The notes under the pieces: generated by a model
Told to the model about the DNA's origin: nothing
Databases searched by the model: none
The model's input: the letters and a program-made list of their open reading frames with translations, nothing else
Assembly: GCA_037379345.1 (NCBI GenBank)
Contig: CM074516.1
Location: forward strand, 5,518,001 to 5,582,000
From: Perna viridis
Lineage: Eukaryota
DNA: 64,000 bases
Direction of reading: 5' to 3'
Program-made: the position numbers and the translations under genes
Shown here: positions 1 through 46,500 of the stretch, piece after piece
Layout: every line of letters starts with the position of its first letter
Position numbering within the stretch: position 1 is the first letter of the stretch

Positions 1-80
1 ATGCTATTGTTTTCATATGTTAATTTGCTCTTAACTGAAACAAACACTCAACCCTCGAGGTAAAATAAGAAGGATAATTA

Positions 81-160
81 TCTGTATAATACTAGGTACA
101 TGTAATGTGCTAGTGTGTTATAAATCAATTAGCACTTACATGTGCTTGGAATTATGCAGA
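81..160 (+). ncRNA. pre-miRNA-like hairpin, type A (predicted 5p 92-114, 3p 130-151)
   Basis: TCTGTATAAT-A-CTAGGTACATGTAATGTGCTAGT-loop-ATTAGCACTTACATGTGCTTGG-A-ATTATGCAGA; CTAC at 169-172. Confidence 0.75.
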
Positions 161-238
161 TTTTCTTTCTACAGTTAACCCAACTTTCATTTTCTTTATT
201 TATTTTCAATTTTAAGTTAATCATTTATGAAGCATCTT

Positions 239-314
239 AAAGTGTTCTGCTTTTAGTACATGTTAGTGCTAGTGTTGGACTATACCACTAGTGCACCAAT
301 GAGTGGTTCATTTT
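239..314 (+). ncRNA. pre-miRNA-like hairpin, type C (8-nt deletion in 3' arm)
   Basis: 5' arm CTTTTAGTACATGTTAGTGCTAGTG; 3' arm lacks the ATTTCTAT seen in the copies at 1455 and 2254. Confidence 0.55.
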
Positions 315-406
315 GGAGCAAACACATCTATGATTACTGAATTTCTCATTGTTAATTGAAAAAAATAATTCTTAGCTTTTTTATCACCAAGTATTTTCTA
401 CAATTA

Positions 407-488
407 GCTCTTGACATTTCCAAGTACATATAATGTGCCAGTGTATATAATGCTACTAGCACTTACATGTGCTTGGAAAAGTGTGGGC
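407..488 (+). ncRNA. pre-miRNA-like hairpin, type B (predicted 3p 457-478)
   Basis: TTTCCAAGTACATATAATGTGCCAGT-loop-ACTAGCACTTACATGTGCTTGGAAA; CAAC at 494-497. Confidence 0.75.
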
Positions 489-713
489 ATAAACAACTCT
501 CTTTAACAAGCTTTCATTTAGAAACACACAAACACACAGGGATAAATTTCACCAGTGATTCTACTTTGTACCATCATCTATATGTCAATGTCTATGTAAG
601 CGTTTTTTGTATGAATGATTTTATGACTGCTGAGTTATGTATGTTTTAATCAAAAACTTCCTTCTATCATTTGTTTTGCCCTATAAGCACATCGTAGATA
701 ATGTGATTTGCTT

Positions 714-791
714 AGTGTACTGCTTTTAGTACATGTAAGTGCTAGTGTTTAATTAACCACTAGTCCTCAGGTGTACAAAAAGTGTTGCACT
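714..791 (+). ncRNA. pre-miRNA-like hairpin, type C'
   Basis: AGTGTACTGCTTTTAGTACATGTAAGTGCTAGTG...CACTAGTCCTCAGGTGTACAAAAAGTGTTGCACT; CTAC at 798-801. Confidence 0.65.
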
Positions 792-918
792 TTAAAGCTA
801 CTGATTTCAGGTCATCTTTCAACATTTGTTTTTTTTTTATAATATGTTTATTTGCATTCCAACTTAACCATTTACTCCCCAAAATATCAAGGTTGCAAAA
901 GACCATATCTAAAAATAG

Positions 919-998
919 TCTGCATAATTCTGGGCACATGTAATGTGCTGGTGTGCAATTAATCAATTAGCACTTGCATGTGCTTGGAATTATACAGA
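919..998 (+). ncRNA. pre-miRNA-like hairpin, type A
   Basis: Paralogue of 81-160; GGCAC replaces GGTAC (U:G to C:G pair). Confidence 0.7.
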
Positions 999-1088
999 TG
1001 CTCTTTTTCAGAAATCCAAACTTAACTTTGATATTCTGTCCTTCAACTTGTTTTTCATGTTGCTCTTCATTGATGATTCAAACATCTC

Positions 1089-1175
1089 AAAGTGCTCTAC
1101 TTTTAGTACATGGTAGTGCTAGTGGTGAAATATATCACTAGTATTTCCCTGCACTCATCATGAGTGGTTCATCTT
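1089..1175 (+). ncRNA. pre-miRNA-like hairpin, type C
   Basis: CTTTTAGTACATGGTAGTGCTAGTG...CACTAGTATTTCCCTGCACTCA. Confidence 0.6.
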
Positions 1176-1253
1176 TTAAGTTATTCCATGACAAATATCA
1201 TACCAAAGAAAACAGTGGTTCAGATTGGTATTTTAGAAGTATATTCTTCAATG

Positions 1254-1334
1254 GCTCTGACATTACCAGGTACATATAATGTGCCAGTGTATATAATTCT
1301 ACTAGCACTTACATGTGCTTGGAAATGAATGTGC
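1254..1334 (+). ncRNA. pre-miRNA-like hairpin, type B
   Basis: CCAGGTACATATAATGTGCCAGT...ACTAGCACTTACATGTGCTTGG. Confidence 0.7.
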
Positions 1335-1454
1335 TATGTAAGAAATGTTCCACTGACACTTGTATGTAACATTATGTATGTGATTTTCTTTCTTAATTTT
1401 CAATTCTAACAAGTTTTTTTAATGTAGCTAGTCATTTATGAAGCAAGCATCTTA

Positions 1455-1537
1455 AAGTGTTCTGCTTTTAGTACATGTTAGTGCTAGTGTTAAAACATAC
1501 CACTAGTATTTCTATGCACTAATGAGTGGTTCATCTT
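1455..1537 (+). ncRNA. pre-miRNA-like hairpin, type C
   Basis: AAGTGTTCTGCTTTTAGTACATGTTAGTGCTAGTG...CACTAGTATTTCTATGCACTAATGAGTGGTTCATCTT. Confidence 0.7.
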
Positions 1538-1621
1538 CAAAGCAATTCCATTTTTATCACAGCATGACAAATTTCATATCAAAGACCACAGATATGTAGA
1601 TCAGTATTTTTTTCTACAATG

Positions 1622-1702
1622 GCTCTTACATTTCCAAGTACATATAATGTGCCAGTGTATATAATTCTACTAGCACTTACATGTGCTTGGAAATGAATGT
1701 GC
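1622..1702 (+). ncRNA. pre-miRNA-like hairpin, type B
   Basis: CATTTCCAAGTACAT...ATGTGCTTGGAAATG. Confidence 0.7.
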
Positions 1703-1878
1703 TATGTAAGAATTGTTCCACTGACACTTATGTGCCATTATCTATTGGTAATGAAGCATGTAACACTTTGCCTGAATATCACTTTTATCACTGCTTAATA
1801 ATGCCTATTTTTAACATCAAAAACTTTTTTCCTATATATATATGTCTGCCCTAATGAGCTTCTTTTGAAAATATACTT

Positions 1879-1953
1879 AGTGTACTGCTTTTAGTACATG
1901 TTAGTGCTAGTGTAATAGACAACTAGCTCACTTGACCAAAATAGTGTTTCACT
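1879..1953 (+). ncRNA. pre-miRNA-like hairpin, type C' (diverged 3' arm)
   Basis: Invariant 5' arm; 3' arm AACTAGCTCACTTGACCAAAATAGTG. Confidence 0.55.
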
Positions 1954-2062
1954 TTAAATATTTTGATTTCAGTTTTCTATCATATTGTATATTGCCTTTA
2001 CACTTCAACCATTTACTCACCTCAATACTAAGTTGCAAAAAGATCATTCATCTGAAAATTTG

Positions 2063-2142
2063 TCTACATAATACTAAGTACATGTAATGTGCTGGTGTGC
2101 AATTAATCAATTAGCACTTGCATGTGCTTGGAATTATGCTGA
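2063..2142 (+). ncRNA. pre-miRNA-like hairpin, type A
   Basis: CTAAGTACATGTAATGTGCTGGT...ATTAGCACTTGCATGTGCTTGG; CTAC at 2150-2153. Confidence 0.7.
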
Positions 2143-2253
2143 TTTTTTTCTACAGTTAACTGAATTACACAACAACTTTTTCTTTTTTAATTTTCAATTG
2201 TAAATTTTGAAGTTTTTTTAATGTAGCTAGTCATTTATGAAGCAAGCATCTTA

Positions 2254-2336
2254 AAGTGTTCTGCTTTTAGTACATGTTAGTGCTAGTGTTGAAATATACC
2301 ACTAGTATTTCTATGCACTAATGAGTGGTTCATCTT
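2254..2336 (+). ncRNA. pre-miRNA-like hairpin, type C
   Basis: Near-identical to 1455-1537 except in the loop. Confidence 0.7.
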
Positions 2337-2634
2337 CAAAGCTATTCCATTTTTATCACAGCATGACAAATTTCATATCACAAATTTCAAAAGACCACAG
2401 AAATATAATCCTACTAGCACTTACAAGTGCTTGGCAAAGTGTGAGCATAAACATGTACATAACCTCACTAGTTTTTACCAGCTTATTGAAAAAAAAAACA
2501 TAAGCTTCTGATAAAATATGCCACAACGCTTTAATTTTTGAAGATCATTAAAAACTTCTATTATTTGTTTTGCCCTATTAGTGCTTCTAAGAAAATGTAA
2601 TTTGCTTAGTGTACCGTTGTTAGTATATAATAGC

Positions 2635-2712
2635 CTGCATAATACTAAATACACGTAATGTGCCGGTGTGCAATTAATCAATTAGCACTAACATGTGCTT
2701 GGTATTATACAG
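2635..2712 (+). ncRNA. pre-miRNA-like hairpin, type A (3p UAGCACUAAC variant)
   Basis: CTGCATAATACTAAATACACGTAATGTGCCGGT...ATTAGCACTAACATGTGCTTGGTATTATACAG. Confidence 0.6.
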
Positions 2713-2809
2713 ATTCTCTTCTTCAGAAATCCAAACTAAACTAGAACTTTAAATTTCTTTCAACCAGTTTTTCGTGTTGCTCTTTATTTATGATTCAAAC
2801 ATCTCAAAG

Positions 2810-2884
2810 CACTTTTAGTACATGTTCGTGCTAGTGTTGAAATACACCACTAGTATTTCTATGCACTAATGAGTGGTTCATCTT
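2810..2884 (+). ncRNA. pre-miRNA-like hairpin, type C
   Basis: CACTTTTAGTACATGTTCGTGCTAGTG...CACTAGTATTTCTATGCACTAATGAGTG. Confidence 0.6.
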
Positions 2885-3262
2885 TAAAGCTATTTAGTTT
2901 GTATGACAACATGACAAATGTGATATAAAACACAACAGGAGTCAGATTGGTATTTTGTAAGCATATTCTACAATGGCTCTAAGTACATGTAATGTGGCAG
3001 TGTATATAATCCTACTAGTGCTTGGAAATGTATGGGCATAAACAACCACTCAACAGTTTTCATTGAGAACCACATGATTAGAGCAGGTTGATTCTTTTAT
3101 TTAATCTTAGTGTTTGGGATAAATCAGTAATACTTGTAATGCAATTATTCATTCTCCGCTATATTTTTTTATGACTGCCAAGTTTGCTTGCTTTTAACAT
3201 CAAATCTTTCCTGCTTATATTTTACGCCTTCTTTTAGCATTCTAGGAAAATGCAATGTGCTG

Positions 3263-3341
3263 AGTGTAATGCTTTCAGTACATGTTAGTGCCGGTGTAAA
3301 ATTGGACCACAAGTACTTATGTGTATTTAAAGTGTTTCACT
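3263..3341 (+). ncRNA. pre-miRNA-like hairpin, type C' (diverged)
   Basis: AGTGTAATGCTTTCAGTACATGTTAGTGC...GTACTTATGTGTATTTAAAGTGTTTCACT. Confidence 0.55.
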
Positions 3342-3504
3342 ATAGACTGATTCAATTCCTTTGTTAATTGTTATCTATCATTTGTTACTTGCCTTTATTT
3401 GCATTTAAACTTCACCTTTTCTCATCAATATGGTAACATAAAGATTACCATTTGTATAATATTAGGTACATGTATTGTGCTGTTATGCAGCAACCAATTA
3501 GTAT

Positions 3505-3735
3505 TAACATGTGAATGGAATCATGTGGATTCTTTTTTACATATCCTAATTAGCATATGCATTGAATCATGTGGATTCTTTTTTTACATATCCTAATTAG
3601 CATGTGCATGGAATCATGTGGATTTTTTTTTTACATATCCTAATTAACATATGCATTGAATCATGTAGATTCTATTTTACATATCCTAATTAAGATGTGC
3701 ATGGAATCATGTGGATTCTCTTTTACATATCCTAA
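3505..3735 (+). repeat. ~46-47 bp minisatellite, 5 copies, arising from the 3' arm and flank of a decayed type A hairpin
   Basis: Units CATRTGCATKGAATCATGTGGATT(C)TnACATATCCTAATTAR; the CATATCCT motif ends at 3547, 3594, 3641, 3687 and 3733. Confidence 0.9.
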
Positions 3736-3771
3736 CTATACAATAACTTTTCATGATGTTCTTCCTTCTAA

Positions 3772-3850
3772 AAGTGTTCTGCTTTTAGTACATGTTAGTG
3801 CTAGTGTTGAATTATACCACTAGTATTTACATGCACTAATGAGTGGTTCA
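3772..3850 (+). ncRNA. pre-miRNA-like hairpin, type C
   Basis: Invariant 5' arm; 3' arm CACTAGTATTTACATGCACTAATGAGTGG. Confidence 0.7.
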
Positions 3851-3917
3851 ACAAAGCCATTCCGCTTGTATGAGAAAAATGATTCAGACTTGTATTCTGT
3901 AAGCATGATCTACAATT

Positions 3918-3990
3918 GCCCTAAAGTACATATAATGTGCTGGTGTATATAATCCTACTAGCACTAACATGTGCTTGGGAAAGTGTTAGC
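3918..3990 (+). ncRNA. pre-miRNA-like hairpin, type B (lower stem shortened)
   Basis: AAGTACATATAATGTGCTGGT...ACTAGCACTAACATGTGCTT. Confidence 0.55.
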
Positions 3991-4282
3991 ATCTACATGC
4001 ACATAACTCACTGGAATAATACCAGTTTTTAAAAGAAAAAAACACTAAACAATATAGAGCTTTATATCTTAGGGTTATTGATCAACCATACAACAGAAAT
4101 TGTTTATGCTACTAGTTTTTTTATTGTTTTTGATTTTAGTATAATAACATTGTATGTACAACAAAGTAATTTGACTTTTCTATGCTGATTTATACACGTT
4201 TTTAAACCAAGAACTTATAAAATTTCCCTCTTCTAACTTTATCCTTTTCACTCTGAATAAAGAACATGCAATTTGTGTATGC

Positions 4283-4356
4283 GAGACACTTTTAGTACAT
4301 GTTAGTGCTAGTGTAAAATTGGACCACTAGTACTTATGTGTACTAAAAAGTGTTTT
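4283..4356 (+). ncRNA. pre-miRNA-like hairpin, type C' (near-perfect stem)
   Basis: GAGACACTTTTAGTACATGTTAGTGCTAGTG-loop-CACTAGTACTTATGTGTACTAAAAAGTGTTTT; CCAC at 4366. Confidence 0.7.
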
Positions 4357-4478
4357 ATTTTGAAGCCACTGATTTCACTTAAATTGACACACATTCTCAT
4401 ATTGTGATTATCTCACTATATATGTATTCCTCCCACAAAAACTACCCTCATCCACAAAGTAAAATCATAAAAAATAAT

Positions 4479-4556
4479 CTGTATATTACTAGGTACATGT
4501 AATGTGCTGGTGTGCAATTGATTAATTAGCACTTACATGTGCTTGGAATTATGCAG
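4479..4556 (+). ncRNA. pre-miRNA-like hairpin, type A
   Basis: CTAGGTACATGTAATGTGCTGGT...ATTAGCACTTACATGTGCTTGG; CTTC at 4565. Confidence 0.7.
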
Positions 4557-4971
4557 TGGTTCAACTTCAAAGCTATTGCATTTTTATTGCAGCATGCTGA
4601 TTCTTTGTAAAATTGTGTTTTTATTGGCATATTATGCATGAGCTTTGGATTATTTTCTTGAAGATTGAAATTGTTCTGCATTAAAATGAATGCATAATGT
4701 GACTACATGTATAAACATTCTATCATTTACATGTGCCAGGTGTAAGTTTGGAACTTCACTTGCAAGAAAGTTATCTTCCACTACTCTTGTTGCTTCATTT
4801 CAATCATCTTGAGTTTTGTTAATACACAGTATATTGCCAGTAATAGATTGTACCAATATTACTTTATTTGCCAATGAGCGAGTCATCAAGTTATTGATTT
4901 CAAGAAAACTTAAAAATGCTTGAAAAAATGGGCATTAGTATAAGCTCTCATTTGTTTTCCTTGCCAAAAAT

Positions 4972-5051
4972 AAAGCTCTGCTCTTAGTACATGTTAGTGC
5001 TAGTGTTGAATTGTATCACTGGTAATTATATGTTCTAAGAAGTGGTTCTTT
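4972..5051 (+). ncRNA. pre-miRNA-like hairpin, type C
   Basis: CTCTTAGTACATGTTAGTGCTAGTG...CACTGGTAATTATATGTTCTAAGAAG. Confidence 0.65.
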
Positions 5052-5130
5052 AAAAGCAACACATTACTCACTTCTGTCACTGTAAACAGTTGGTACAACA
5101 CATCTGTATTAAACATGATTTAATTCTGCA

Positions 5131-5260
5131 GCTCATACATTTCCAAGTACATATGCAGTGCCAGTGTGTATATATGTTCTAAGAAGTGGTTCTTTAAAAG
5201 CAACACATTACTCACTTCTATTGAAAACTAGCACTTACATATGCTTGGAAATGTGTGGCT
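5131..5260 (+). ncRNA. type B hairpin with a 49-nt insertion in the loop
   Basis: Both arms intact; 5171-5219 is an exact copy of 5027-5075. Confidence 0.5.
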
Positions 5261-5476
5261 AGAAACTACAAATGAAATCCATCCACAAAAATCTAAAAAA
5301 ATGAGCACACTGGCCCATCTATTTTTTCTTCTTATATCTCTCTAGCATGAATTATCTCGAAAGGTTTCACAACCATTCGAAATGCTTTTTATTCTTAAAT
5401 AGAGAAGCAAACATCCTTACTCTCACAAATATACCTTTCCAAGGTGGAATTCAATCCAGTGAAGTGAAAGCTTTGA

Positions 5477-5553
5477 TGTTCTGCTTTTAGTACATGCTAG
5501 TGCTAGTACTAAATTGAACTACTAGTTCTTACATGTCCTTAAAAACAGTTCAT
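5477..5553 (+). ncRNA. pre-miRNA-like hairpin, type C/C'
   Basis: CTGCTTTTAGTACATGCTAGTGCTAGTA...TACTAGTTCTTACATGTCCTTAAAAACAG. Confidence 0.55.
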
Positions 5554-5755
5554 ATAAAAGCAATTCAGTTTTAAGTCATTGTTTGCATAGGTAGTGTGCA
5601 ACTTGTACATGCTTGTAGTACATGCTTGTGCTACTGTCAGATCTATATTGAGGTGTTCATTTCAATGATTTTCTCTTTACTGTCATATCTATTTTAAATT
5701 GATATGCAATGAACAATTCAAAAGTCTAGTATTTTCATCTACACTATAAATTTAA

Positions 5756-5835
5756 CTCAAACATTTCCAAGTACATATTATGTGCCAGTGTATATAATCG
5801 TACTAGCACGTAAATGTGCTTGGAAAAGTGTGGGC
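5756..5835 (+). ncRNA. pre-miRNA-like hairpin, type B (3p UAGCACGU variant)
   Basis: TTTCCAAGTACATATTATGTGCCAGT...ACTAGCACGTAAATGTGCTTGGAAA. Confidence 0.65.
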
Positions 5836-5997
5836 ACCTACACATAAGTATACATTAAATTCACTTACTTTCCCTAGTTAATTTGTTTTATTCAGATTAT
5901 ATTGATGGGTGCTCTACCTTAAGTACATGCTTAGTAATCATTAGGTCTTTTCTTTTTTGACTAAATGTTATCCTTCTTATGCTTTCTGAGCTTCTAC

Positions 5998-6085
5998 ACT
6001 GTATAAAACTAGGTACATGCTGAAATATGTGCTTTAGTGCAGTAAAAAATCAACTAGCACTTACCTGTGCTTGGTGTTATGCAGT
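5998..6085 (+). ncRNA. type A hairpin, 5' arm with insertion
   Basis: ACTGTATAAAACTAGGTACATG...CTAGCACTTACCTGTGCTTGGTGTTATGCAGT. Confidence 0.5.
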
Positions 6086-6360
6086 CATCTATTATCAAGA
6101 CTGGACAAATACAAGTATGGATCTAGGCCAATAGTACGTTTCACAAATTTGCTATCACTAGTTCTCTCATGCAAGGCACCCCTACTATGATGGTTCAAAC
6201 AGATATTCAGTGTTCTACTTATAGTACACATTAGTGCTAGATTTGATTTGTACTATTAGCACTATTTAGTACTTGTGATTCATATGAATCAATTCGAACT
6301 TCGAACTACAGAACACGTCTTTTGTTTTCTTTGATCTATTTATGCTATTGCAAAAAATAC

Positions 6361-6443
6361 AATCTATATAATGCTAGGAACATGTAATGTGCTGGTGTGC
6401 AATTATCAACTAGCACTTACATGTGCTTTGAATTATGCAGATT
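6361..6443 (+). ncRNA. pre-miRNA-like hairpin, type A
   Basis: AATCTATATAATGCTAGGAACATGTAATGTGCTGGT...ACTAGCACTTACATGTGCTTTGAATTATGCAGATT. Confidence 0.65.
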
Positions 6444-6696
6444 CTTTCTAGGAAACCAGGGAAGAGTGAGTGTCTGTCACTGTTTTTCTCAGTTAAATAC
6501 ATCACATTTTACAGTTTGTACTAACTTTTCTTAAAATACATACCATGGCAGTGTATATAATCTTACTAGCACTGACATGTGCTTGATAAAGTGTACTTTT
6601 GAAAAGTTGGTCCTTATACCAGAAATACTTATGGATGCAAGTAATTTTGGGGCATTTCTTAACTAGGGGCCACAATGATATTTATAAGGACTAGCA

Positions 6697-6778
6697 ATCC
6701 TTACCTTTCCAAGTATAAGTAATTTGCTGGTGTGTAAAATATAACTAGCACTTACATGTGCTTGGATAGGTCTGGGTT
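6697..6778 (+). ncRNA. pre-miRNA-like hairpin, type B-like
   Basis: ACCTTTCCAAGTATAAGTAATTTGCTGGT...ACTAGCACTTACATGTGCTTGGATAGGT; 3' arm invariant, 5' arm diverged. Confidence 0.7.
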
Positions 6779-7117
6779 TGTCTCTCTTCTACATCACCAC
6801 TAAAGTACACATTTCAGCAAATGTTGTGGATAAACCTTTAGTCAAAAGTCAGAAGTACTTGTTTATTTATACAATATTGAATGAGGGTTCCACATGTATT
6901 TCAAGACACATTACATCATTGCATCTCATCTTAATTTAAGGACTATTGTTCTGGTCAAGTTAATTATTGCTGAACATTCCAAGCATATTTTTCCAAGTCA
7001 ATTTGAAATCCAAATTCCAAGCATAAACTTTCATAACACAGATAGTGTGCTGAAGGAAACAAAATGAACTAGCACTAACCCTTGCTCTTTAACACTCTTT
7101 TTCCACCATTATAAAAC

Positions 7118-7200
7118 ACATGGTCTGCCTTTAGTACATGACAAGTGCTAGTGTTTATATATACTACTAGCACTAAGCATGTTCTATAAGTATGTCATGT
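7118..7200 (+). ncRNA. pre-miRNA-like hairpin, type D (3p UAGCACUAAGCAUGUUCUAUAA, 7168-7189)
   Basis: ACATGGTCTGCCTTTAGTACATGACAAGTGCTAGTG...TACTAGCACTAAGCATGTTCTATAAGTATGTCATGT; CTTC at 7205. Confidence 0.7.
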
Positions 7201-7385
7201 TTCACTTCTCTGGGTGTTATATACTATCTCTTATGTCTTAAATATCTGAAGCAAGCACTTGTTATGTCCTCAGTTGTTGGTAATGTAGAAATTTACCCCT
7301 TAATAAGTTGATACATACGATACTGGTAGTTCTTGACACATGTTGGATTTAATATTTCAACTGTCCAGCTGGTAAAGTTTACTTA

Positions 7386-7460
7386 TCTGTATAATTCCAA
7401 GTACATGTGCTGGTGTGCATAAAAAAATTTAGCACTTACATGTGCATGGGATTATGCTGG
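7386..7460 (+). ncRNA. type A hairpin, 5-nt deletion in 5' arm
   Basis: TCTGTATAATTCCAAGTACATGTGCTGG...TTAGCACTTACATGTGCATGGGATTATGC. Confidence 0.5.
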
Positions 7461-7618
7461 TAACAGTGCACTGTTCTTTCATAACAAAGCACGGTCAACT
7501 ATAGTGCTTGTTTACATTAACTATTAACACCATGTATGTTCTACTAGGAAGTTGATGCACATCTTCCACTAAATGTAAATTACCATTTTTACACTATTAC
7601 TACTATCATTAAAAAAAA

Positions 7619-7700
7619 GCATAGCCTGCTTCTACTACATGACAAGTGCTAGAGTCTATATTTCCTACTAGCACTAAGCATGTTCTACAAGTATTTCAAG
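7619..7700 (+). ncRNA. pre-miRNA-like hairpin, type D
   Basis: TACATGACAAGTGCTAG...CTAGCACTAAGCATGTTCTACAAG; CATC at 7706. Confidence 0.6.
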
Positions 7701-7870
7701 TTTAACATCTTCCATTTATAAAACTAACAATACCTTTTCTTTAACAATGTCTTTGGCACTAATCAACTTCATAATATTTAATAACAGGCAAATCAATCTC
7801 TGACTGAGTATGCACATTTTTTATTCATGCTACTGAAATGTTGACTTCAGCAGTTCAGTTGACTTTCTAA

Positions 7871-7948
7871 CCTGTATAATACTAGGCACATGTAATGTGC
7901 TAATGTGTTATCATCAATTAGCATTTCATGTGCTTGGAGTTATGATGG
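7871..7948 (+). ncRNA. pre-miRNA-like hairpin, type A
   Basis: CTAGGCACATGTAATGTGCTAAT...ATTAGCATTTCATGTGCTTGG. Confidence 0.6.
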
Positions 7949-8287
7949 TGACAGTGCAGTTGCAGTTTTCCATCATTCAAAAAATCTACTAGAATTACCA
8001 CTAGTATCACTGTATCACTTCTGTATTTTGAATTACTCAAAAATGTATGGTATGCTTTTAGTACATGACAGTATCTTACTAACACTAAGCATGTTCTACA
8101 AATATGTCAAGTTGCAATTCAGAAGAATACTTAATTTCTCCACTATATAATTCTTTCACAATCTTTATGTATGTAAGAATATCACTGGCACTAAGCACAC
8201 TCTTCTAGTAAACTACAAAGCACACCTTCACCTTACATAAACAGTGATTAGATCTTTTTTTCAATTTTACAATTTTATCAGTTTCTC

Positions 8288-8370
8288 TATGATGTATTAC
8301 TTAGTACATGACAAGTGCTAGTGTTAACATATACTACTAGCACTAAGCATGTTACTACAAGTATGTCATG
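8288..8370 (+). ncRNA. pre-miRNA-like hairpin, type D
   Basis: TATGATGTATTACTTAGTACATGACAAGTGCTAGTG...TACTAGCACTAAGCATGTTACTACAAGTATGTCATG. Confidence 0.65.
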
Positions 8371-8499
8371 ATGTAATCCTTCTACTCAGTGAAACTTCCT
8401 GTACAGAATTCTCAGTACCTTACTAGCACTAAGCATGTTCTATTAACTATACCCAATTTACAATTTTATCACTTTCTTCAAAATGTATCACTTAAGAAT

Positions 8500-8582
8500 G
8501 CATAGTCTGCTTCTAGTACATGACAAGTGCTAGTGTTTACATGTATTTCTAGCACTAGGCATGTTCTACAAGCAAGCCATGT
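8500..8582 (+). ncRNA. pre-miRNA-like hairpin, type D
   Basis: TGCTTCTAGTACATGACAAGTGCTAG...CTAGCACTAGGCATGTTCTACAAGCA; CATC at 8587. Confidence 0.7.
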
Positions 8583-9212
8583 TTCTCATCTTTCACAAGT
8601 AAGTATGTGACAAACACTGGTGCAAAAATAAACTATTAGCAGTTAGCATGTTCAAGAACTATGACATGTTCATCTTCATCAAATATTTCCCCATTTAACC
8701 TCACTTTTTTACATTCTTGTAGTGAGTTGTCTCAATGTCATTATCTTGCTTATTGTGATAATGCCATGTTAGGAGTGTGTGGTACATATTTCATTTAATA
8801 TGGAGTTCGTGGGATTCGTTTGGAAGTTGTTTGACTTCTGTCGACTAGTTTTGTCATACTTGGAGTGTCAGTCAGGGTTACATGATCTTGACAAATCATT
8901 GCACTTCTTTTGTTATCCCCTTATCATTGCCTGTTCTATTTATAGAACTGTTAAAAATAAAATAGTTGCACTGTGAGAGTTCTAACAATACGATATTTTC
9001 ATTTGTATTGGTGATTTTAAATGTAGAAAGAGTAACAGTCAATGTGCTGTCCTTGTAAATCACAAAATAAATGCTTTCTGCAAAAGTATGTAAATTGTGC
9101 TAAAGCACTTGTTTTGTGCTTATATCCAGTCTGTAATAAATATACTTAACTTGCATGTGTGATTTTCATGTCAAGTGACCGAGGAATACACCCAATTTCC
9201 ATTGTTAATACA

Positions 9213-9296
9213 TTCTCTTTACTTCTCCTGGTACATTATAGTGCTGGTGTGTAAAGTTTTACTAGCACTTACATGTGCTTGGAAAAGTTTGGGATT
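9213..9296 (+). ncRNA. pre-miRNA-like hairpin, type B-like
   Basis: ACTTCTCCTGGTACATTATAGTGCTGGT...ACTAGCACTTACATGTGCTTGGAAAAGT; CTTC at 9301. Confidence 0.7.
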
Positions 9297-9404
9297 CCTG
9301 CTTCATTTTCCAAATCTGTGATGGTGTTTTTCTTTCTTGTGCACCTGGTGCTGAGTTATCTTTTAGTCTGGTTCATTTATTTTGGAAATTTGACCCATGA
9401 ACAG

Positions 9405-9628
9405 TCTGGAACTGTTGTGATGATTTGTGTTTCTAGAAGCTATCAACTGGTACTGTTACAATGATGTGTTTCTAAAATGTATCAACTGGGACTGTATGGA
9501 TGATTTGTGTTTCTAGAAGATATCAACTGGGACTTCCGTGGTGATTTTTGTTTTTAGAAGCTATTAACTGGGACTGTTTGGATAATTTGTGTTTCTAGAA
9601 GGTATCAACTAGGACAATGATTTATGTT
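9405..9628 (+). repeat. ~41-bp minisatellite, ~5.5 copies
   Basis: Repeated CTGGGACTGT...GATTTGTGTTTCTAGAAGNTATCAA. Confidence 0.85.
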
Positions 9629-9660
9629 CCTTAATGTTCATGTGCATTTCAACATAGTTT

Positions 9661-9746
9661 TATTGTGTTATGCCTTTAGTACAAGGTGAGTGCTGGTTAG
9701 ATGATATAACACCTGCACTAATCTTGTTCTGTATGTATGACAAATA
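9661..9746 (+). ncRNA. most distal, diverged type D-like hairpin
   Basis: TAGTACAAGGTGAGTGCTGGT...ACCTGCACTAATCTTGTTCTG; CATG/CATG replaced by CAAG/CTTG (compensatory). Confidence 0.6.
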
Positions 9747-10179
9747 AAGATCATCAAGCTCTTCTATTATTTTTGGACATGTTTGTCTTGTTTTAGTTGG
9801 TATAAGGGTTATCTTCACTGTTCGATCTTAGTATGTTTTATTGCTTTTAGTATTGAGTTTCTTGATAATAAGTTAAATATTAAATACTAACTATACTATT
9901 CTTCCTACCTTCTTTTTATCTGGGAATTAAGACCTTGTTTTTGTTAGACATGTTTTGATATGATTCACTAAATCCTGTTAGAAATATTTTTTCAATACTT
10001 TTATCTGAGAAAAAGAGGTGTGCTTATCAGTTGCTTTTGGATTTTGAATTAGCTTACAGAAACAATTAGTACTCTTTCCAGGTAGGTACAGCTTGTTGTT
10101 AAGGTGTTTGTATTCTGTATCTACCTCAAGAGTTTGAATTTGACAATTTTTAGCTTGTTTAAATGTTGTATTTACCCAC

Positions 10180-10460
10180 ATGTCCCAGGTTAGGGGAGGG
10201 TTGAGAGCAGAAAAACTGCGCCACATACTTTTTGTCCCTGTCTCAAGCCAAGTAGCTGTCTTTATTATCCGTTCAATTTTTTTCTATAGATTAGGTAGAT
10301 TTTTGTCAAAGTTTTACACTGGGCCTTTTAAAGCTTGCCTTATGCTATAGAATGATGGGTATTGTCCGTTAAGACCATTTGGTGACCTGAAGAAGTTTAG
10401 TTGTTCGGTGCTTGTAATTTGGTGGAAGACCATCTCATTAGCAATCATACCACATTTTTG
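10180..10460 (+). mobile_element. Degenerate bivalve interspersed repeat (Mg1-like)
   Basis: Motifs GGGCCTTTTAAAGCT, GGTGACC and CTCATTAGCAATCATACCACAT resemble a common mussel dispersed repeat (recalled, not searched). Confidence 0.5.
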
Positions 10461-14156: not shown

Positions 14157-14562
14157 ATTAGTCATTATCAAGTCTGAATCACACCTGCGTTTGATCAGAC
14201 GCATTTTTTGACATACTACAAATTTTATTAATCAAGCGCTGGAATGATAAAGATCAAATTTCCTTGATAAACATTTGAGGAAAATATTGTTGCTCAATTA
14301 CAATTTCACAGTTAAAAAAACGCAGAAACGAAAAGCTGATGACAAGGCATCAGACCTACTGATTAGTCATCATCAAGTCTGAATCACACCTGCGTTTGAT
14401 CAGACGCATTTTTTGACGTACTACAAATTTTATTAATCAAGCGCTGGAATGATAAAGATCAAATTTCCTTGATAAACATTTGAGGAAAATATTGTTGCTC
14501 AATTACAATTTCACTGTTAAAAAAACGCAGAAACGAAAAGCTGATGACAAGGCATCAGACCT
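14157..14562. repeat. Recent ~201-bp tandem duplication (period 205)
   Basis: 14157-14357 and 14362-14562 differ at only a few positions. Confidence 0.95.
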
Positions 14563-15681
14563 GGAGACGGAATCAATTGACACGGTGTCTTCTTAACCAG
14601 CAAACAGAATTATTCATAAGATTATCAGATAACAAAATTGCATTTATATCAATTGGGACTTGACACATTGTCCGGGCTTAGTGTACAAAAGGTGAAAAAG
14701 TCCAGGGCTCAGGTCTTCCAAAAAAAAATTTCAACCCCTGACCACTTGATGGATTTTGATGAGTGATGTACCAAAAGATATAAGATTGTAGAATGGCAAC
14801 ATATACATGTATTTAATTGAAATGAGAGGAATATTAATATTTTTTTTAAATTAGGTCTTAATAGACAACTGACCTAAAAAATTCACTTTTTTACAGGTTC
14901 ATAAAGGCTGATTTGTCATTGAGTGTTTGTGAAAATATTGCACCTATTAAACTGAAATTAACATCAAATGAAATATAAAAATCTGCTGAATAGCTGAATT
15001 GATAAATGTGCTCTGAATAACAAAAAATGACTAAATGAATGTACCTATGTCTTGAGATAAACAAATTTTCAATTTCAAAAACTATACTCCAGTAAACTTT
15101 TAATCATTGTGTCATCCTACTCATTAACCTTTTGAGTTTACTACCAATTAAAAATATAAAGAAACCTCTTTAAAATGATATAATTTTTATTGCATAATAA
15201 TTTGTTTGAAATACTGTTACAGTTAGAAGTTGACCAATTTCATTAATTTTCTTTGGGGCAATTACCGATATCTAATAAGTAATTCTTGATTATTACAGGT
15301 AATTTTTTTTACATTTTTATTATATTTTAGTGTTCTGAGAACACATCCTACATCAGTATTTTCATCAACTTTTTTCAAAATTAATTTGTTAATTCTATAT
15401 TTAAATGACTGAAATCCTGCATAGAATAATTTACCTTTCCCAAGTATGCATTAATCAAATATAAACTTGATAGGCTTTAAGTTTATCCAGTATAGAGACT
15501 AGGGAGGCAGTTATTTTTGTACATTATACAGACTTTGTTAGGAGTGACTAGTCCCTGGTTAAATATAATTAGAATTCAAATAGTTCCTTCCCACCAAGGT
15601 AAAATCTAAATGATATAAATGATTTGCATATATAGGAATACACTAACATGAAAGGTTCAGAAGTCTTATCATATTATAGTG

Positions 15682-15759
15682 GATTCTGTGTCCGGGGGTG
15701 TTTTCTGATTTTGGCCCATTTAGTGGGCCAAATCAGAAAACAGCCCCTGACACTGAATC
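15682..15759. repeat. ~36-bp-arm imperfect palindrome, probably subterminal in a decayed DNA transposon
   Basis: GATTCTGTGTCCGGGGGTGTTTTCTGATTTTGGCCCA / TGGGCCAAATCAGAAAACAGCCCCTGACACTGAATC. Confidence 0.75.
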
Positions 15760-17096
15760 AAAAAAGGGATTGTACATGTGATATACTGGTCAAAAAGTAG
15801 TTCAATGCTGCCAAGTAATTCTCACCAATTTTTCGTTGATCAAAATTTAAGGAAAAACGCCTATAAGATTGCTGATATTACGCTCTCAAAAGTGAGCTAT
15901 CATACAACAATTTTCATTGAAAATTTTGGTGAGCATATTGGGAAGAATCGTTTCGGTCTCAAAAGTGGTCTTCTCTCTGACCCGTACTGGTAGTAGCAGT
16001 GTTTTATTAGCTGTGAAACGTAGTCTAACTATTTTTTTTTTATTTTTGAAACGTTAGATCGAAAAATCAAAAAGAAAGATCAAGAGCTACTATTTGAAGT
16101 ATTTCGCAGCTATGTTTTTATAGGAAAATGAAAAAAAAATGTCACTAGCAAACAATGCTTTCTCTTACTCAAGAATATGAAACATTTTTTCATTTGGATA
16201 CTGTTTAACTAGATTAGGATTATAGTGTCTCCTATTTTTTCATGTAATCATTGTCTTTTTTGTATTTTATGGATTATTTACATTTTCTAATCTGGCGCCT
16301 TCTATGTAATGCGCATGCGTTTCATGGCACAATAACCATCGAACCAACAACGGAACGACCATGAAATAATTCCCTTTCAATTTATATCGATTGTTTGAAT
16401 TATTACGACTCAAATAATCGTCAAATCTGCAAAATGAGCTAAAAGGGAAAAACCTGGATCGACTTAAAACATATCTAATCAAATTCAAGCTTGTTGTAAA
16501 TTGTTAACATATAACTCAAATGACATTCAATTTATTTTTAAAATATCACACAAAAATTCGCTTTCGGTTTACTTGGAACACATAGATATACGAACACAAA
16601 ACTCTCTGACATCCTACATAATTGAAAAACAAAGATTTTTATTATTGTTATCTAGTTGGTCTTTTCCAGTTTCTAAATTTTCAAATTAGCGAACTTCATG
16701 TCAAAACTGCCTGTCCATTCGAAAACTTGAGCCACAATTGTGAAACCGACCCTGCCCTTAGATGTACGTACCTCTCATCTAGCTATACAGCTATTTCCTA
16801 GTTGATAAGCTAAAGCCCGCGTTGCATAGACATCTATGTGTCACGTAAAAGTACACTGACATAAACACTGAAGTCTCAGAATATGATTTCAACAATAAGG
16901 TCTGATGAAAGCCATGCTCTTCTAAGTCTCTTGTACTCCTACAATATAATAGAACGTATACCCTTTCGAATTAAGGGTGTAATGAAGTTTATCTTAATAA
17001 TTTATTTTAATAAATGCTGCTGTTCTGGCAGTTTATTGACGTTATTAACATGGAATTTAACTTGATATTTAAAAACAACTGTAAGGAGACCTAAAT

Positions 17097-22786: not shown

Positions 22787-23671
22787 TTACAAAACAATAC
22801 AAACAGCTGAGCCGTCCACGGAATCTATAGTGTCTGACGGTCTTTTAATCACGTTACGACGATGCTCTCCGACCAATTCCTCTGGATTTTTTAGCAAATG
22901 GAGTATGTGCTTATGGCCATACTTGATGGCAGCACCATAAAGAGTCAAAGGCGAATAAGGTTCAAAGTAACTCTCTCTGTGTGAAAGGTCAGACGTTGCA
23001 AGATCTACTTCGTGGTGAAGTAACAAATAGCGCATGCGTTCCTCATCACCTGCTATGGTCGCGTGAGCAAACTCAATGGAAGCCTCATTTTGCAATAACA
23101 TTTTAACAATTTTGTCACATGCGTTTTGTTCCTTGGCGTATTCAATCAGAGATTTGTTATTCCTAGAAATGTTAATCCTGCACCACGACTTGACTAGGAC
23201 GTTCGTTTTGAAAGCTTTGTCATTTTCAACGGCATCCCAATACCCTGGCGCGAATTTTTGATAGGCGCTGGTTAATTCAAAACCTGATGGCCCACTGACA
23301 CTGCGGAGTAATTCCAGTTCGACTTCTTTATCACAAGAAGCGCCGCATTTTACAAGTGCCAGCATAACTTCCATCAGAGCCTTACCGATAGCAAAGTGAA
23401 GAGGTGAGATTCCTTTCATGTCTGGTGTATCTAGTTTTGCCCCCGCGTTTGACAATTGATACACCATTGGGATATATTTTCTTTCAATACCAAACGAGGC
23501 AAATGCGCTAATCACGTGCAGGAAAGATTGGCCAGTTTTAGAACATGTTCTGTTAACATCCTCACCTCCTTTGATGCTAGCTAGAAAGACTAGACTATCC
23601 TTGGACAGAATTCCTTGGAAAAGCTTCGTTTTCACGAATTCCTCCTCATAATCTCGAAGTATTTTATCCAT
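22787..23671 (-). CDS. Intronless ankyrin-repeat protein (294 aa) with C-terminal CaaX (CIVL)
   Basis: Uninterrupted ORF; ANK motifs GEDVN..GQSFLH, GAKLDTPDMKGISPLHFAI...LVKCGA and LYGAAIKYGHKHILHLL; ends SAVCIVL*. Confidence 0.85.
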   Translation of the reverse strand: MDKILRDYEEEFVKTKLFQGILSKDSLVFLASIKGGEDVNRTCSKTGQSFLHVISAFASFGIERKYIPMVYQLSNAGAKLDTPDMKGISPLHFAIGKALMEVMLALVKCGASCDKEVELELLRSVSGPSGFELTSAYQKFAPGYWDAVENDKAFKTNVLVKSWCRINISRNNKSLIEYAKEQNACDKIVKMLLQNEASIEFAHATIAGDEERMRYLLLHHEVDLATSDLSHRESYFEPYSPLTLYGAAIKYGHKHILHLLKNPEELVGEHRRNVIKRPSDTIDSVDGSAVCIVL

Positions 23672-43500: not shown

Positions 43501-46500
43501 TGAGCTCTTTTCTATGAAATCAATGAACCGTAAGATGGACAAAAATAAATAAGATAACCACCAAACATTGTATCTGCTATAAAAGTACAGTGAAACCTGT
43601 CCAAACCAAACCCTGAATAATCCAAAATCCTGTCCAACCAGACCCTGAATAATCCTAAATCCTGTCCAAACCAAACCCTGAATAATCCAAAATCCTGTCC
43701 AAACCAGACTGAATAATCCAGAATCCTGTCCCAACCAAACACTGAATAATCCTAATTCCTGTCCAAACCAGACTGAATAATCCTAAATCTTGTCTAAACC
43801 AGACCCTGAGTAATCCAAAATCCTGTCCAAATCAGACTGAATAATCCAAATTCCTGTCTAAATCAAACCCTGAATAATCCAAAATCCTGTCTAAACCAAA
43901 CCCTAAATAATCCAAAATCCTGTCCAAACCAGACCCTGAATAATTGAAAAAATGTTGTCCAAACCAGACCCTGAATAATCCAAAATTCTGTCTAAACCAA
44001 ACCCTGAATAATCCAAAATCCTGTCTAAACCAAACTCTAAATAATCCTAAATCTTGTCTAAACCAGACCCTGAATAGTCCCAAATCCTGTCCAAACCAGA
44101 CCCTGAATAATCCCAAATCCTGTCCAAACCAAACCCTGAATAATCCAAAATCCTGTCCAAACCAGACACACTTCAAAGTCCCTTTTAAAAATGTATTTTG
44201 AACCTGGGTAAACCATACTGTCAAAACCAAACAGATTTTAAAGTCCAAAAGGTTTCATTGTATATACCTCTTAATTTTTGGGTGGAAACTCACAATTTTA
44301 CAAGTGAGAATATTGAACTCTAGTATATATTGAGTACATGTATTTATGATTCAGGTTTGGCCAGTACAACTGAGTCTTATGAGATATTCCTGCTATCATC
44401 GGCAGCTATAGCTAATATTACATTCATGGACAGTCTTGGCTGTGAAATACTAGCTCAGTATGAAGCCCCTAGGATTCTTATAAAGGCATGTGGAACTTCT
44501 ATAGCTAAATCTGTATTTGCTAAAGACCAGGTATGTAAAAAATTACAAGTGGTACTATTTTATTACTGTGAAATGTGTGTTGTAACATTATGAAAATTGT
44601 CATTCTGCTGCATGTTTTGTAGATTCTTCTAAATCTTACAACATTTCTTTCGTATGAAGTAATAAAACTATAAAAAAAAAACCTGAGAGGAGGTGGTGTA
44701 GTTCAATGTCTACAATAATAATTTAACTTGATTTATAAAAAGCTTTCTGATTGGTTGGTTCTCTTTGAGCAAACCAAATTATTTTGTATAACCTGGCTTG
44801 ATACTATGACGTTGATTGATCCACACTGCTATTCAAATAATGCCACACAAAAAAAAAACAAAAAAAAGAAGCATTTTGATCACAAATCAATTATTAATAT
44901 TTGGACTATCACTCATTAGAAATTAAAGCAGAAACATTCTTTAAATAATTTAATCTGATTTGTAAGTAGCATTCTGATTGGTTGGTTCTCTTTGAGCAAA
45001 CCAGGTTATTTTGTATAACCTGGCTTGGTATTATGACATGTTCAAAAATTAGAAACATTCTTTAATTAGAGTAAACTGATGTGATGTGACAGCAATGATT
45101 GGATAATGATCTGAGGGTGTCAAAGTCGTCCGTATATGAACAGGGTAAAATATATAATGGATTTTGTTTTTGATAGAACAACAAAATGTCATAGAAATCA
45201 CTATACTTTACATCTTTTTCTTAGGTTGTTACTGTTTTAGCCAATATGGTGGCAGTTGACATGTGTAGACCTAGTATTATAAACAGTAATGGAATCAGTC
45301 TATGTTTAGAACTTTTAAACATCTGTCCATCAAATTATAAATCGGCACCAGAGATATCAGCTTGTGAACGGGTACAGCAGAAGGCAGCCATTGCTTTAAC
45401 AAGGATGTGTCGGGATGAAGAAGTTGGCAAAGTCATAGTATCATCCTCAGGTATTGAATTGATCATTGAACTTTTTAAGGCTTACTTAAGAAAACTTCTT
45501 AGTTTTCAAAGCGCAAAATATTCCAGGTCTAAAAATGGCACTCAAGCAGGTTAGGGGCAAATTTAAGGGCACTTCATGCAAACATTAACATCTATTTAAG
45601 AAAAGTTGACAGAAAAGGGCAGGGTGTTTATAAAATCCATGAAAAAAGGACATGGCACCTGTGCCTACCCCAAACTGTCTGTCTAGAACACTATCTCAGA
45701 CCCTCTATAAAAAGCGAAAGCACTGGACATAAACTTCCTAAAACTGGGAAAATGGCTGTGATCCAAGAAATGTTGATTTAAGTCAGCATTCAAAGATTTC
45801 AAACATGAATAATAAATACAGATTATTTCATGTCATGTTCATATTTTCATATTGCATGTTTTACAACACTAAAGTTTTTGATATTGAGAGCTTCAAGGCA
45901 TTGCTTGAAAGCCATTGATAAAGATGTAGAAAAGCATGCAGTAATAACTCGTAGCAATGAATACTGTTACAAACATATGCAGTAATTTCATTACAACCAG
46001 ACCAGATTCTGTTTTGCTATTTTTTATCCAGATTAATCATTTACTGTTCATTCGTTTCTGGTTCTGTCACTTTCTGCTGATGGCCTAAAATCAGTTCAGA
46101 ATTTCGAGTCAAAAGAATGTATCTGAATGGGATAATATGCCTTTATTTGGTCTGTTATTTGTGCTTCAGACTACAAAGATCATTCAATCAATATGATTTT
46201 AGGTATACCCAGACTGGTACAGTTGTGTAGAGATGCTAAGGAAAGAAACAAAAGTGAGGCAGTATTAGTGGCCTGTTTAGTAAGTATTTATTTAAGTCTG
46301 ATGATAATGAAAAAAAAATTATAAAAGAAATCAGTTTGTACTTATAGGCATTCCTCAACCAGTACAATTAAAACATTTTAAATTAACAACATACTGTAAT
46401 TTTTATGCCCAGCTACACAAATTTACAAGTTGTCATGTGGTACTCTCTGTCTGTCTCTTGGCGCTTTATTTATTATAACTTTAGAAGATACCAGATGATT

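Follow-up and report, generated by a model that had tools for sequence, protein, structure and literature searches.

The stretch considered here, referred to as the window, comprises 64,000 nucleotides of the bivalve Perna viridis (GenBank assembly GCA_037379345.1, contig CM074516.1, hereafter C6, forward-strand positions 5,518,001 to 5,582,000), and its first 9.7 kb is occupied by a tandem array of paralogous hairpins of the microRNA (miRNA) precursor type. A covariance model built from 51 distinct hairpins aligned from the cluster yields 38 + strand matches at window positions 76-9748, of which 30 score at least 50 bits and eight are weak or decayed. These 38 matches bear out the original prediction, made from the window alone, of approximately 40 paralogous hairpins on one strand. 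Model matches on the - strand at cluster positions always score below their + strand counterparts. Similarly, the 22-mer UAGCACUUACAUGUGCUUGGAA occurs 18 times on the + strand of the window with up to three mismatches and never on the - strand, with none expected by chance. Folding of a sliding 80-nt segment gives 30 + strand minima of -22 kcal/mol or lower in positions 81-9746 versus five in the next 6 kb.

The window contains the 3′ 9.7 kb of the cluster, which continues for 8 kb upstream of window position 1. As a whole the cluster spans C6:5,510,024-5,527,746 (window -7976 to 9746), and comprises approximately 74 hairpins on one strand over 17.7 kb, with 36 covariance-model matches upstream of the window and 38 within it. 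A search of the 723-Mb genome with the 22-mer, which lies in the 3′ (3p) arm of the hairpin, gives 38 matches; 36 fall at C6:5,510,024-5,527,284, every one on the + strand, and the remaining two each have two mismatches. A genome search with the 5′ (5p) arm motif of the type B hairpins described below is restricted to the same stretch, and it is because the matches to both motifs are confined there that the cluster length is set at 17.7 kb. The rest of the window (54 kb) and a further 10 kb upstream contain no match to the model. The predicted extent of 81-9746 holds for the hairpins of the window, about eight of whose 38 copies are decayed, but falls 8 kb short of the whole cluster. No inverted copies were found in the cluster, and it contains no open reading frame (ORF) of at least 120 aa. 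In its upstream part, three copies of a 1.7-kb unit are 95-97% identical and contain sub-repeats of ~0.85 kb with ~91% identity; this part is judged from its sequence to be young, and the window part, in which several 3p-only fragments accompany the ~8 decayed copies, to be older and heterogeneous.

Alignment traces all cluster hairpins to one ancestral stem and divides them into five types. Types A and C have in common the 3p sequence UAGCACUUACAUGUGCUUGGAA on unrelated lower stems, and types B and B2 have in common the 5p sequence UUUAGUACAUGUUAGUGCUAGU with divergent 3p arms. Type D (7114-8586) carries a 5p arm reading …ACAUGACAAGUGCUAG and a 3p arm that starts UAGCACUAAGCAUGUUCUA. The 3p variant of the C6 cluster reads …CUUACAUGUGCUUGGAA and differs at 5 of 22 positions from that of the sister arrays on C7 and C12 described below, which makes the loci distinguishable.

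The hairpins fold as RNA of the + strand. Sixteen representatives have minimum free energies (MFE) of -26 to -42 kcal/mol, corresponding to z-scores of -3.4 to -9.5 against dinucleotide shuffles, and 15 of the 16 fold less stably when reverse-complemented, in keeping with the observation in the original prediction that G:U pairs make the stems fold well as + strand RNA. Counted outward from an ACAUG/CAUGU anchor without gaps, 72% of positions pair through position 18, and a shift of the partner by 1-3 positions lowers this to 35-47%; from position 19 outward, pairing drops to a background of ~40%. The predicted 5p start lies at position 7 and the predicted 3p end at position 9 from this anchor. 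The stem is thus ~33 bp long; 9-11 bp of it lie beneath the predicted cuts as the lower stem, and the loops measure 10-15 nt, so that the geometry proposed at the outset also stands.

The pairing has been maintained through sequence change. In the consensus structure 76.7% of cells pair, versus 26-44% with slid partners, and the covariation score of 0.260, compared with a shuffled value of 0.195, is reached by none of 500 shuffles. Within the lower helix, 14 of 15 pairs have changed on both sides. Across types A, C, B, B2 and D and the related contig CAJHWL010003263.1 (discussed below), lower-stem pairing is 0.72 with a hairpin's own partner, 0.48 with the partner from another type and 0.38-0.41 beyond the junction. 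As lower stems pair within their own type and yet differ in sequence between types, the lower stem has been rebuilt several times while the helix was retained.

Divergence, expressed as pairwise differences per site, was compared between 27 distinct A and C copies and 19 B and B2 copies. It is highest in the flanks (A+C, 0.67-0.71; B+B2, 0.61-0.62) and lower in the lower stem (A+C, 0.46-0.49; B+B2, 0.38-0.49). The two arms behave reciprocally: in A+C, the 3p arm diverges by 0.096 and the 5p arm by 0.249, and in B+B2, the 5p arm diverges by 0.061 and the 3p arm by 0.315. The conserved arm is almost invariant in the seed and at positions 11-16, and variable at positions 9-10 and at the 3′ end. 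Among eight old A+C copies, 3p divergence is 0.166 versus 0.364 for 5p. Seventeen old copies (136 pairs) are similar only from about -40 to +40 around the hairpin centre, and their spacers cannot be aligned. This is the pattern expected of guide strands, with a putative arm switch between the sub-families.

Conservation descends from guide to star, lower stem and flanks, the order used in MirGeneDB-type annotation. The hairpins also agree with the layout that such annotation requires of canonical animal miRNA genes: an imperfect hairpin with at least 16 paired nucleotides between two ~22-nt arms, a loop of at least 8 nt, and a stem of about 35 bp whose single-stranded basal junction lies about 11 bp under the Drosha cut. 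Accessory Microprocessor motifs are weakly informative. In most C6-cluster types an apical UGU comes after the 22 nt predicted as the 5p arm, and it is absent from CAJHWL010003263.1. Of 51 copies, 25 have a CNNC motif that begins 13-19 nt past the end predicted for the 3p arm, a modest enrichment among copies that are not independent. Taken together, fold, strand, pairing and arm-specific conservation mark these as selected hairpins of the primary miRNA (pri-miRNA) type and not as a satellite or a miniature inverted-repeat transposable element (MITE).

Individual hairpins of the window, all on the + strand, are given here by type with their covariance-model scores. The first is a type A hairpin at 76-165 (90 bits; MFE -42.3, z -9.45, - strand -22.7) with its predicted 3p guide at 130-151. 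Further type A hairpins lie at 914-1003 (83.4 bits; MFE -42, z -7.4), 2058-2147 (89.9 bits), 2629-2718 (73.4 bits), 4473-4562 (83.6 bits; z -6.3; predicted 3p at 4527-4548), 6358-6446 (85.1 bits) and 7866-7953 (66.2 bits; z -5.0), and another, at 7381-7465 (57.7 bits; z -5.1), has a 5-nt deletion in its 5p arm. Decayed type A copies occupy 3446-3534 (45 bits) and 5993-6090 (35.7 bits). The former has given rise, from its 3p half and 3′ flank, to a dead 46-bp tandem repeat of five units at 3503-3735, recognised by Tandem Repeats Finder and by reading the sequence.

The first type C hairpin, at 404-492 (74.5 bits; MFE -35.1, z -5.9), carries the type A 3p sequence at 457-478 on a different lower stem, and the last, at 9211-9298 (71 bits; z -5.8), has the exact 3p at 9263-9284. 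Between them lie hairpins at 1250-1338 (73 bits), 1618-1706 (78.5 bits), 3905-3994 (60.2 bits), 5751-5839 (66.8 bits; z -7.5) and 6693-6781 (71.1 bits; z -7.0), together with a decayed copy at 6516-6602 (28 bits). Reading of the sequence also identifies a 3p-only fragment of a type C copy at 2395-2440, which has the 3p motif with two mismatches and lacks the 5p arm, and a probably dead copy at 5127-5264 (51.5 bits over 138 nt) with a ~50-nt insertion in its loop.

Type B is represented at 709-795 (57.7 bits; z -4.7), where the 5p arm is conserved, at 3258-3345 (58.9 bits) and 4275-4363 (72.8 bits; MFE -35, z -6.3; predicted 5p product at 4291-4313), by a B-like hairpin at 5470-5558 (53.7 bits) and by a copy with a decayed 3p arm at 1874-1957 (35 bits). 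Type B2 hairpins lie at 1086-1177 (52.1 bits), 1451-1539 (72.3 bits; z -3.8), 2250-2338 (74.4 bits), 2798-2886 (59.9 bits), 3768-3856 (73.7 bits) and 4967-5055 (68.8 bits), and a further one at 236-316 (34 bits; predicted 5p product at 252-274) has a weakened 3p arm and a branched fold. Type D comprises the hairpin at 7114-7202 (64.8 bits; z -3.5), with the 3p start UAGCACUAAGCAUGUUCUA, and those at 7615-7705 (50.7 bits), 8284-8374 (62.9 bits; z -4.0) and 8496-8586 (64.5 bits), the last being the sole one of the 16 folded representatives to favour the - strand (-29.7 on + vs -33.5 on -). A type D copy at 8041-8116 (25.9 bits) has lost its apical part, and a D-like copy at 6204-6292 (36 bits) is weak. 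The last hairpin of the cluster, also D-like, lies at 9659-9748 (42.7 bits; z -4.4) and has an AATAAA within its 3′ lower stem.

A promoter-like stretch at C6:5,508,600-5,508,780 (window -9400 to -9220) lies ~1.2 kb before the cluster's first hairpin. It has two CCAAT boxes, one inverted and one direct, and a TATA-like box, with the sequence TTTATAAA, followed ~60 nt later by the putative donor CAAG|GTAAGC; the stretch may represent the first exon of a host transcript without coding function. Elsewhere in the window, the recognisable coding sequence nearest to the cluster is a 294-aa ORF with ankyrin repeats (Pfam Ank_2/Ank_3) on the - strand at 22787-23671. A near-perfect 80-nt palindrome at 15681-15760, with folding energies of -55.6 and -50.8 kcal/mol on the two strands, is unlike the cluster hairpins and is probably a transposon inverted repeat. 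The window also contains a 205-bp direct duplication at 98% identity (14157-14562) and a 33-bp minisatellite of 17.5 units (43596-44167).

The C6 cluster is a minor member of a much larger family, which totals ~1,600 hairpins in the genome, mostly in two giant arrays on C7 and C12 (~1,500 copies). Sister hairpins carry CCUGGUACUUGCU… with the 3p sequence UAGCACUAGCCUGUGCU[A/U]GGAG, which has 1,534 matches genome-wide. The C7 array, which like that on C12 was characterised by sampling stretches, lies on one strand, starts at 12,524,519 and ends between 12.76 and 12.80 Mb; its ~240-275 kb are made up of 1,006-bp monomers, with 97-99.5% identity throughout, and hold ~1,300 hairpins. Each monomer contains five unlike hairpins with the 3p sequence UAGCACUAGCCUGUGCUUGGAG, which is invariant among the five, and a 431-bp gap with CCAAT-like motifs and an AAG|GTACGT donor. 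The strictly periodic C12 array, found in the genome-wide covariance-model search, occupies 3,605,133-3,755,744 and consists of ~104 copies of a 1,450-bp monomer with two hairpins each, in which hairpin 1 is preceded by a CCAAT box and a TATA-like box, and hairpin 2 has the donor CATG|GTAAGT after it. Homogeneity within either array is 97-99.8%, and the two monomers and the C6 cluster have only hairpins in common. An 11-nt motif, CAATCATGACA, lies upstream of the hairpins in both the C7 and the C12 monomer, and because of its E-value of 0.69 is a weak lead at most.

Smaller loci complete the family. Two six-hairpin copies of the C7 unit lie in inverted orientation ~45 kb apart, at C7:11,879,001-11,885,000 (-) and 11,928,001-11,934,000 (+); both belong to the hairpin family and are broken by a reverse-transcriptase fragment on the opposite strand. 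A three-hairpin cluster at C9:7,394,048-7,396,849 has the 3p sequence UAGCACUUACAGAUGCUGGGGA, almost equal to that of the oyster miRNAs m0316 and m0317, and its sequence makes it the probable orthologue of oyster cluster20. The genome search thus found the family in a few one-stranded tandem loci, without the dispersed, MITE-like copies that had been named as grounds for rejecting the prediction. The giant C7 and C12 arrays appear to be unreported in the literature searched, as do the size of the C6 cluster and its diversified sub-types with an arm switch.

A relative of the C6 variant is present on a 3,815-nt contig from a metagenome collection, CAJHWL010003263.1, which carries ~15-21 hairpins (~15 of them good) at a spacing of ~150 bp. 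Their 3p sequence, …UU[A/G][C/U]AUGUGCUUGGAG, is that of the C6 cluster, whereas the lower stem, loop and spacers differ. The contig is animal DNA. It matches the Perna viridis genome at the C6 cluster alone, over upper stems of ~55 nt at 76-87% identity, and because the match is limited to these upper stems it is assigned to another organism. A second repeated element in the contig gave no convincing fold, and its terminal ORF has no Pfam match. The other 13 of 14 loci from the metagenome scan are chance matches without hairpins, and both matches from a scan of bacterial genomes are likewise due to chance.

Xu et al. sequenced 21 small-RNA libraries from the Pacific oyster, Crassostrea gigas, and their supplement contains unnamed relatives of the hairpin family (PMC4138081). 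The oyster m0316_3p, UAGCACUUACAGAUGCUGGGAA, is identical to the window 3p at 19 of 22 positions, with nt 1-11 and the seed AGCACUU in common and the same arm and register, and m0342_3p is identical to the C7/C12 3p at 22 of 22; m0317_3p is a close variant of m0316_3p, and m0345, m0341, m0348, m0338 and m0215 are further relatives (PMC4138081). The oyster genes are clustered on one strand, as m0314-m0317 (cluster20, scaffold370) and m0338/m0341/m0342/m0345/m0348 (scaffold392), and their reads start at the U of UAGCAC, are 21-23 nt long with dominant forms of 22 nt, and have one main 5′ end (PMC4138081). Counts of m0316_3p rise from 3 in the egg to 290 in the blastula, 1802 in the early trochophore, 789 in the trochophore and 1236 in the D-larva, and are 0 in every later stage and adult organ, including the female gonad; other members have the same stage profile (PMC4138081). 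The predicted 22-nt, 5′-U 3p product has the register of the dominant m0316_3p, m0342_3p and m0345_3p reads. The proposed early-embryonic expression similarly agrees with these homologues, which are near zero in the egg, reach hundreds to thousands from blastula to D-larva and return to zero.

Two parts of the original prediction need correction. As unnamed relatives have been present in the oyster supplement since 2014 (PMC4138081), the family is not wholly new and the description of the cluster as undescribed did not survive; nor is it lineage-specific, since the same variant occurs on CAJHWL010003263.1 and the sister 3p is identical in oyster at 22 of 22 positions. The genomes differ in scale, the clusters in the 2014 C. 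gigas assembly having 3-5 hairpins and those of Perna viridis ~74 at C6 and ~1,500 in the two arrays; moreover, expression was measured in oyster only, and the family in the present genome is known from sequence. The oyster m0341/m0348 and m0146 variants were not found in this genome, which sets it apart from that of C. gigas; the mollusc-type miRNA miR-1985 has an exact match in it. The family is absent from the C. gigas OsHV-1 and Mytilus hemocyte miRNA supplements, blanks that weigh little because both derive from adult material, and full-text searches for the mature sequences in the main texts of papers returned only unrelated primer matches.

Khanal et al. observed that tandem miRNA duplicates on scaffold_488 of the annelid Capitella teleta are abundant from post-zygotic to larval stages, and likened them to miR-430 (2022, PMC8915122). 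The Capitella precursors start CCUGGUACU and have the 3p sequence UAAGCACUAAGAGUACUGG[A/U]AG, resembling the sister hairpins (CCUGGUACUUGCU…) and oyster m0348 (AAGCACUAGCC…), although their 3p start is shifted by one base (seed AAGCACU) and their 3′ halves differ from this family (PMC8915122). Judged by eye from the printed sequences, the Capitella cluster is a probable homologue. No Rfam 15 family reaches its gathering score anywhere in the window, and a permissive scan of positions 1-10000 returned sub-threshold, structure-driven matches to unrelated miRNA families, the best being mir-1271 at 34.7 bits against a threshold of 80.5. Two named seed families were considered and rejected. The guide seed AGCACUU is not that of the miR-430/427/302 family, whose AAGUGCU occurs only inside the type D 5p arm, off its 5′ end; and MIR-29 (seed AGCACCA) differs at the seventh base.

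It is proposed, with considerable confidence, that the C6 array is a multi-hairpin miRNA gene cluster of a conserved, zygotically expressed bivalve family. Transcription and processing of this locus, like its timing and targets, are inferred, and the likely course would be as follows. One or a few + strand RNA polymerase II transcripts would traverse the cluster; Microprocessor would crop each ~33-bp stem 9-11 bp above the basal junction, and Dicer would remove the 10-15 nt loop. The strand then retained by Argonaute would differ between types: in A and C it would be the 3p UAGCACUUACAUGUGCUUGGAA, whose seed is AGCACUU, in B and B2 the 5p UUUAGUACAUGUUAGUGCUAGU, and in D the variant UAGCACUA. 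The cluster itself may grow by tandem duplication and lose copies by decay. The most likely role, by analogy, would be to supply the early embryo and larva with a high-dosage burst of RNAs from a single seed family; this role is favoured because the oyster family is strictly zygotic and the genome holds ~1,600 hairpins.

Several observations weigh against this proposal. The exact window 3p is absent from the oyster list of Xu et al. 2014, the C. gigas OsHV-1 list and the Mytilus hemocyte list. The oyster relatives have reads of both arms with 2-nt 3′ overhangs and uniform 5′ ends, although Xu et al., who accepted some of them as novel miRNAs, classed others as ‘potential’, owing to few reads or a missing 2-nt overhang (PMC4138081). 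About one fifth of the window copies are decayed. The type classes were assigned by eye, which could inflate the within-class arm contrasts, but the arm contrast inside one class and the invariant 3p of the five unlike hairpins of the C7 monomer are independent of these classes. Finally, over positions 4201-10200, three mRNA sequencing runs with ~36 million records in all place a single fragment (~6100-6400) on the cluster, which comes from one run, the other two giving none there, and a fourth run (Logan contigs) over the same positions gives only a 42-nt match at 10021-10062, outside the cluster. The mRNA data give no support for a pri-miRNA; as the tissues of the runs are unidentified, they are not evidence against a stage-limited one. 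RNA reads of spliced appearance, and one contig in which the match is flanked on either side by unrelated sequence, agree with the segment 10021-10062 at 95%; they belong to another transcript, and their source is probably a paralogous exon or repeat elsewhere in the genome.

Some of these observations would be explained if the C6 hairpins were a relic, once miRNA genes and now silent or marginal, with the output of the family coming from the homogenised C7 and C12 arrays. The essentially empty RNA sequencing tracks over 4201-10200 suit such a relic, although a stage-restricted pri-miRNA is not expected in arbitrary RNA sequencing data. The exact C6 3p is missing from the published lists searched, and decay is visible in the eight weak copies, several fragments, the 50-nt loop insertion and the 46-bp repeat built from a 3p half. 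However, the eight old A+C copies have kept their arm-specific constraint (3p 0.166 vs 5p 0.364), the upstream part has been duplicated recently (1.7-kb unit three times, 95-97%), and the UUACAUG variant is retained in a clustered array of another organism. On this balance, a silent C6 locus is considered unlikely.

Bivalve genomes are rich in satellite- and MITE-type repeats, and the hairpins might instead be a DNA-level by-product of a palindromic monomer, devoid of small-RNA function. The tandem layout, which is partly a higher-order repeat, is compatible with such an origin, and the sister arrays, 97-99.8% homogeneous over 150-260 kb, look like satellites. Yet the hairpin alone, and not the monomer, is conserved between old units and between arrays; homogenisation of whole monomers is seen inside the upstream 1.7-kb repeat and in the arrays on C7 and C12. 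Dispersed copies are lacking, with 36 of 38 3p-motif matches at one locus and two mismatches in each of the other two, as are inverted copies in the C6 cluster. Strand-specific, G:U-dependent stems, covariation and arm asymmetry also argue against a DNA-level by-product, and the oyster homologues were sequenced as discrete 22-nt RNAs, leaving this explanation very improbable. Least credible of all is that the hairpins feed an endogenous small interfering RNA or PIWI-interacting RNA (piRNA) precursor pathway, for although some young copies have almost perfect stems and somatic piRNAs are abundant in molluscs (PMC11067994), the hairpins are of miRNA type in stem length, loop size and bulges, conservation falls in blocks of 22-23 nt with U as first base, and the oyster homologues give reads of 21-23 nt dominated by a single 5′ end.

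Comparable amplified clusters are known in vertebrates. Zebrafish miR-430 and Xenopus miR-427 form tandem arrays in which tens to hundreds of paralogous hairpins from one seed family lie on the same strand; they are zygotic and abundant in the early embryo. The primate C19MC and the mouse Sfmbt2 intron-10 cluster are likewise large, lineage-restricted tandem miRNA clusters with stage- or tissue-limited expression, but differ in lying inside Alu or other repeats, in being imprinted and placental, and in having unrelated seeds. The copies of miR-430 are arranged as interleaved sub-types in a higher-order repeat (PMC10417697). The multi-hairpin cluster proposed here resembles miR-430/427 in being a tandem same-strand paralogous array, and its oyster homologues have the same temporal profile; it is unlike them in having no sequence relation, its seed AGCACUU being different from AAGUGCU, of which it is the reverse complement. 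A more ambitious proposal, which we regard as tentative and on the whole doubtful, is that the UAGCACU/AAGCACU hairpins are the spiralian counterpart of miR-430/427: an old annelid-bivalve family that would be switched on at zygotic genome activation, was amplified to ~1,600 copies, and by its dose would clear maternal mRNAs, convergent with miR-430/427 through an unrelated seed. On this view, the promoter-like stretch and splice donor present in each of the 1.0- and 1.45-kb monomers would allow a huge dose of one seed to be produced in the course of a few cell cycles.

If the hairpins are processed as predicted, the genome of Perna viridis holds one of the largest miRNA gene families in any animal, in which the C6 cluster would contribute a diversity of sub-types, with an arm switch among them, not present in the homogenised arrays. 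The identity with oyster at 22 of 22 positions indicates a long-standing constraint. The family would represent a case, independent of miR-430/427, of copy-number amplification giving a fast small-RNA burst. Furthermore, the spiralian maternal-to-zygotic transition would become testable through a seed (AGCACUU/AGCACUA), known loci and a window of development from blastula to D-larva.

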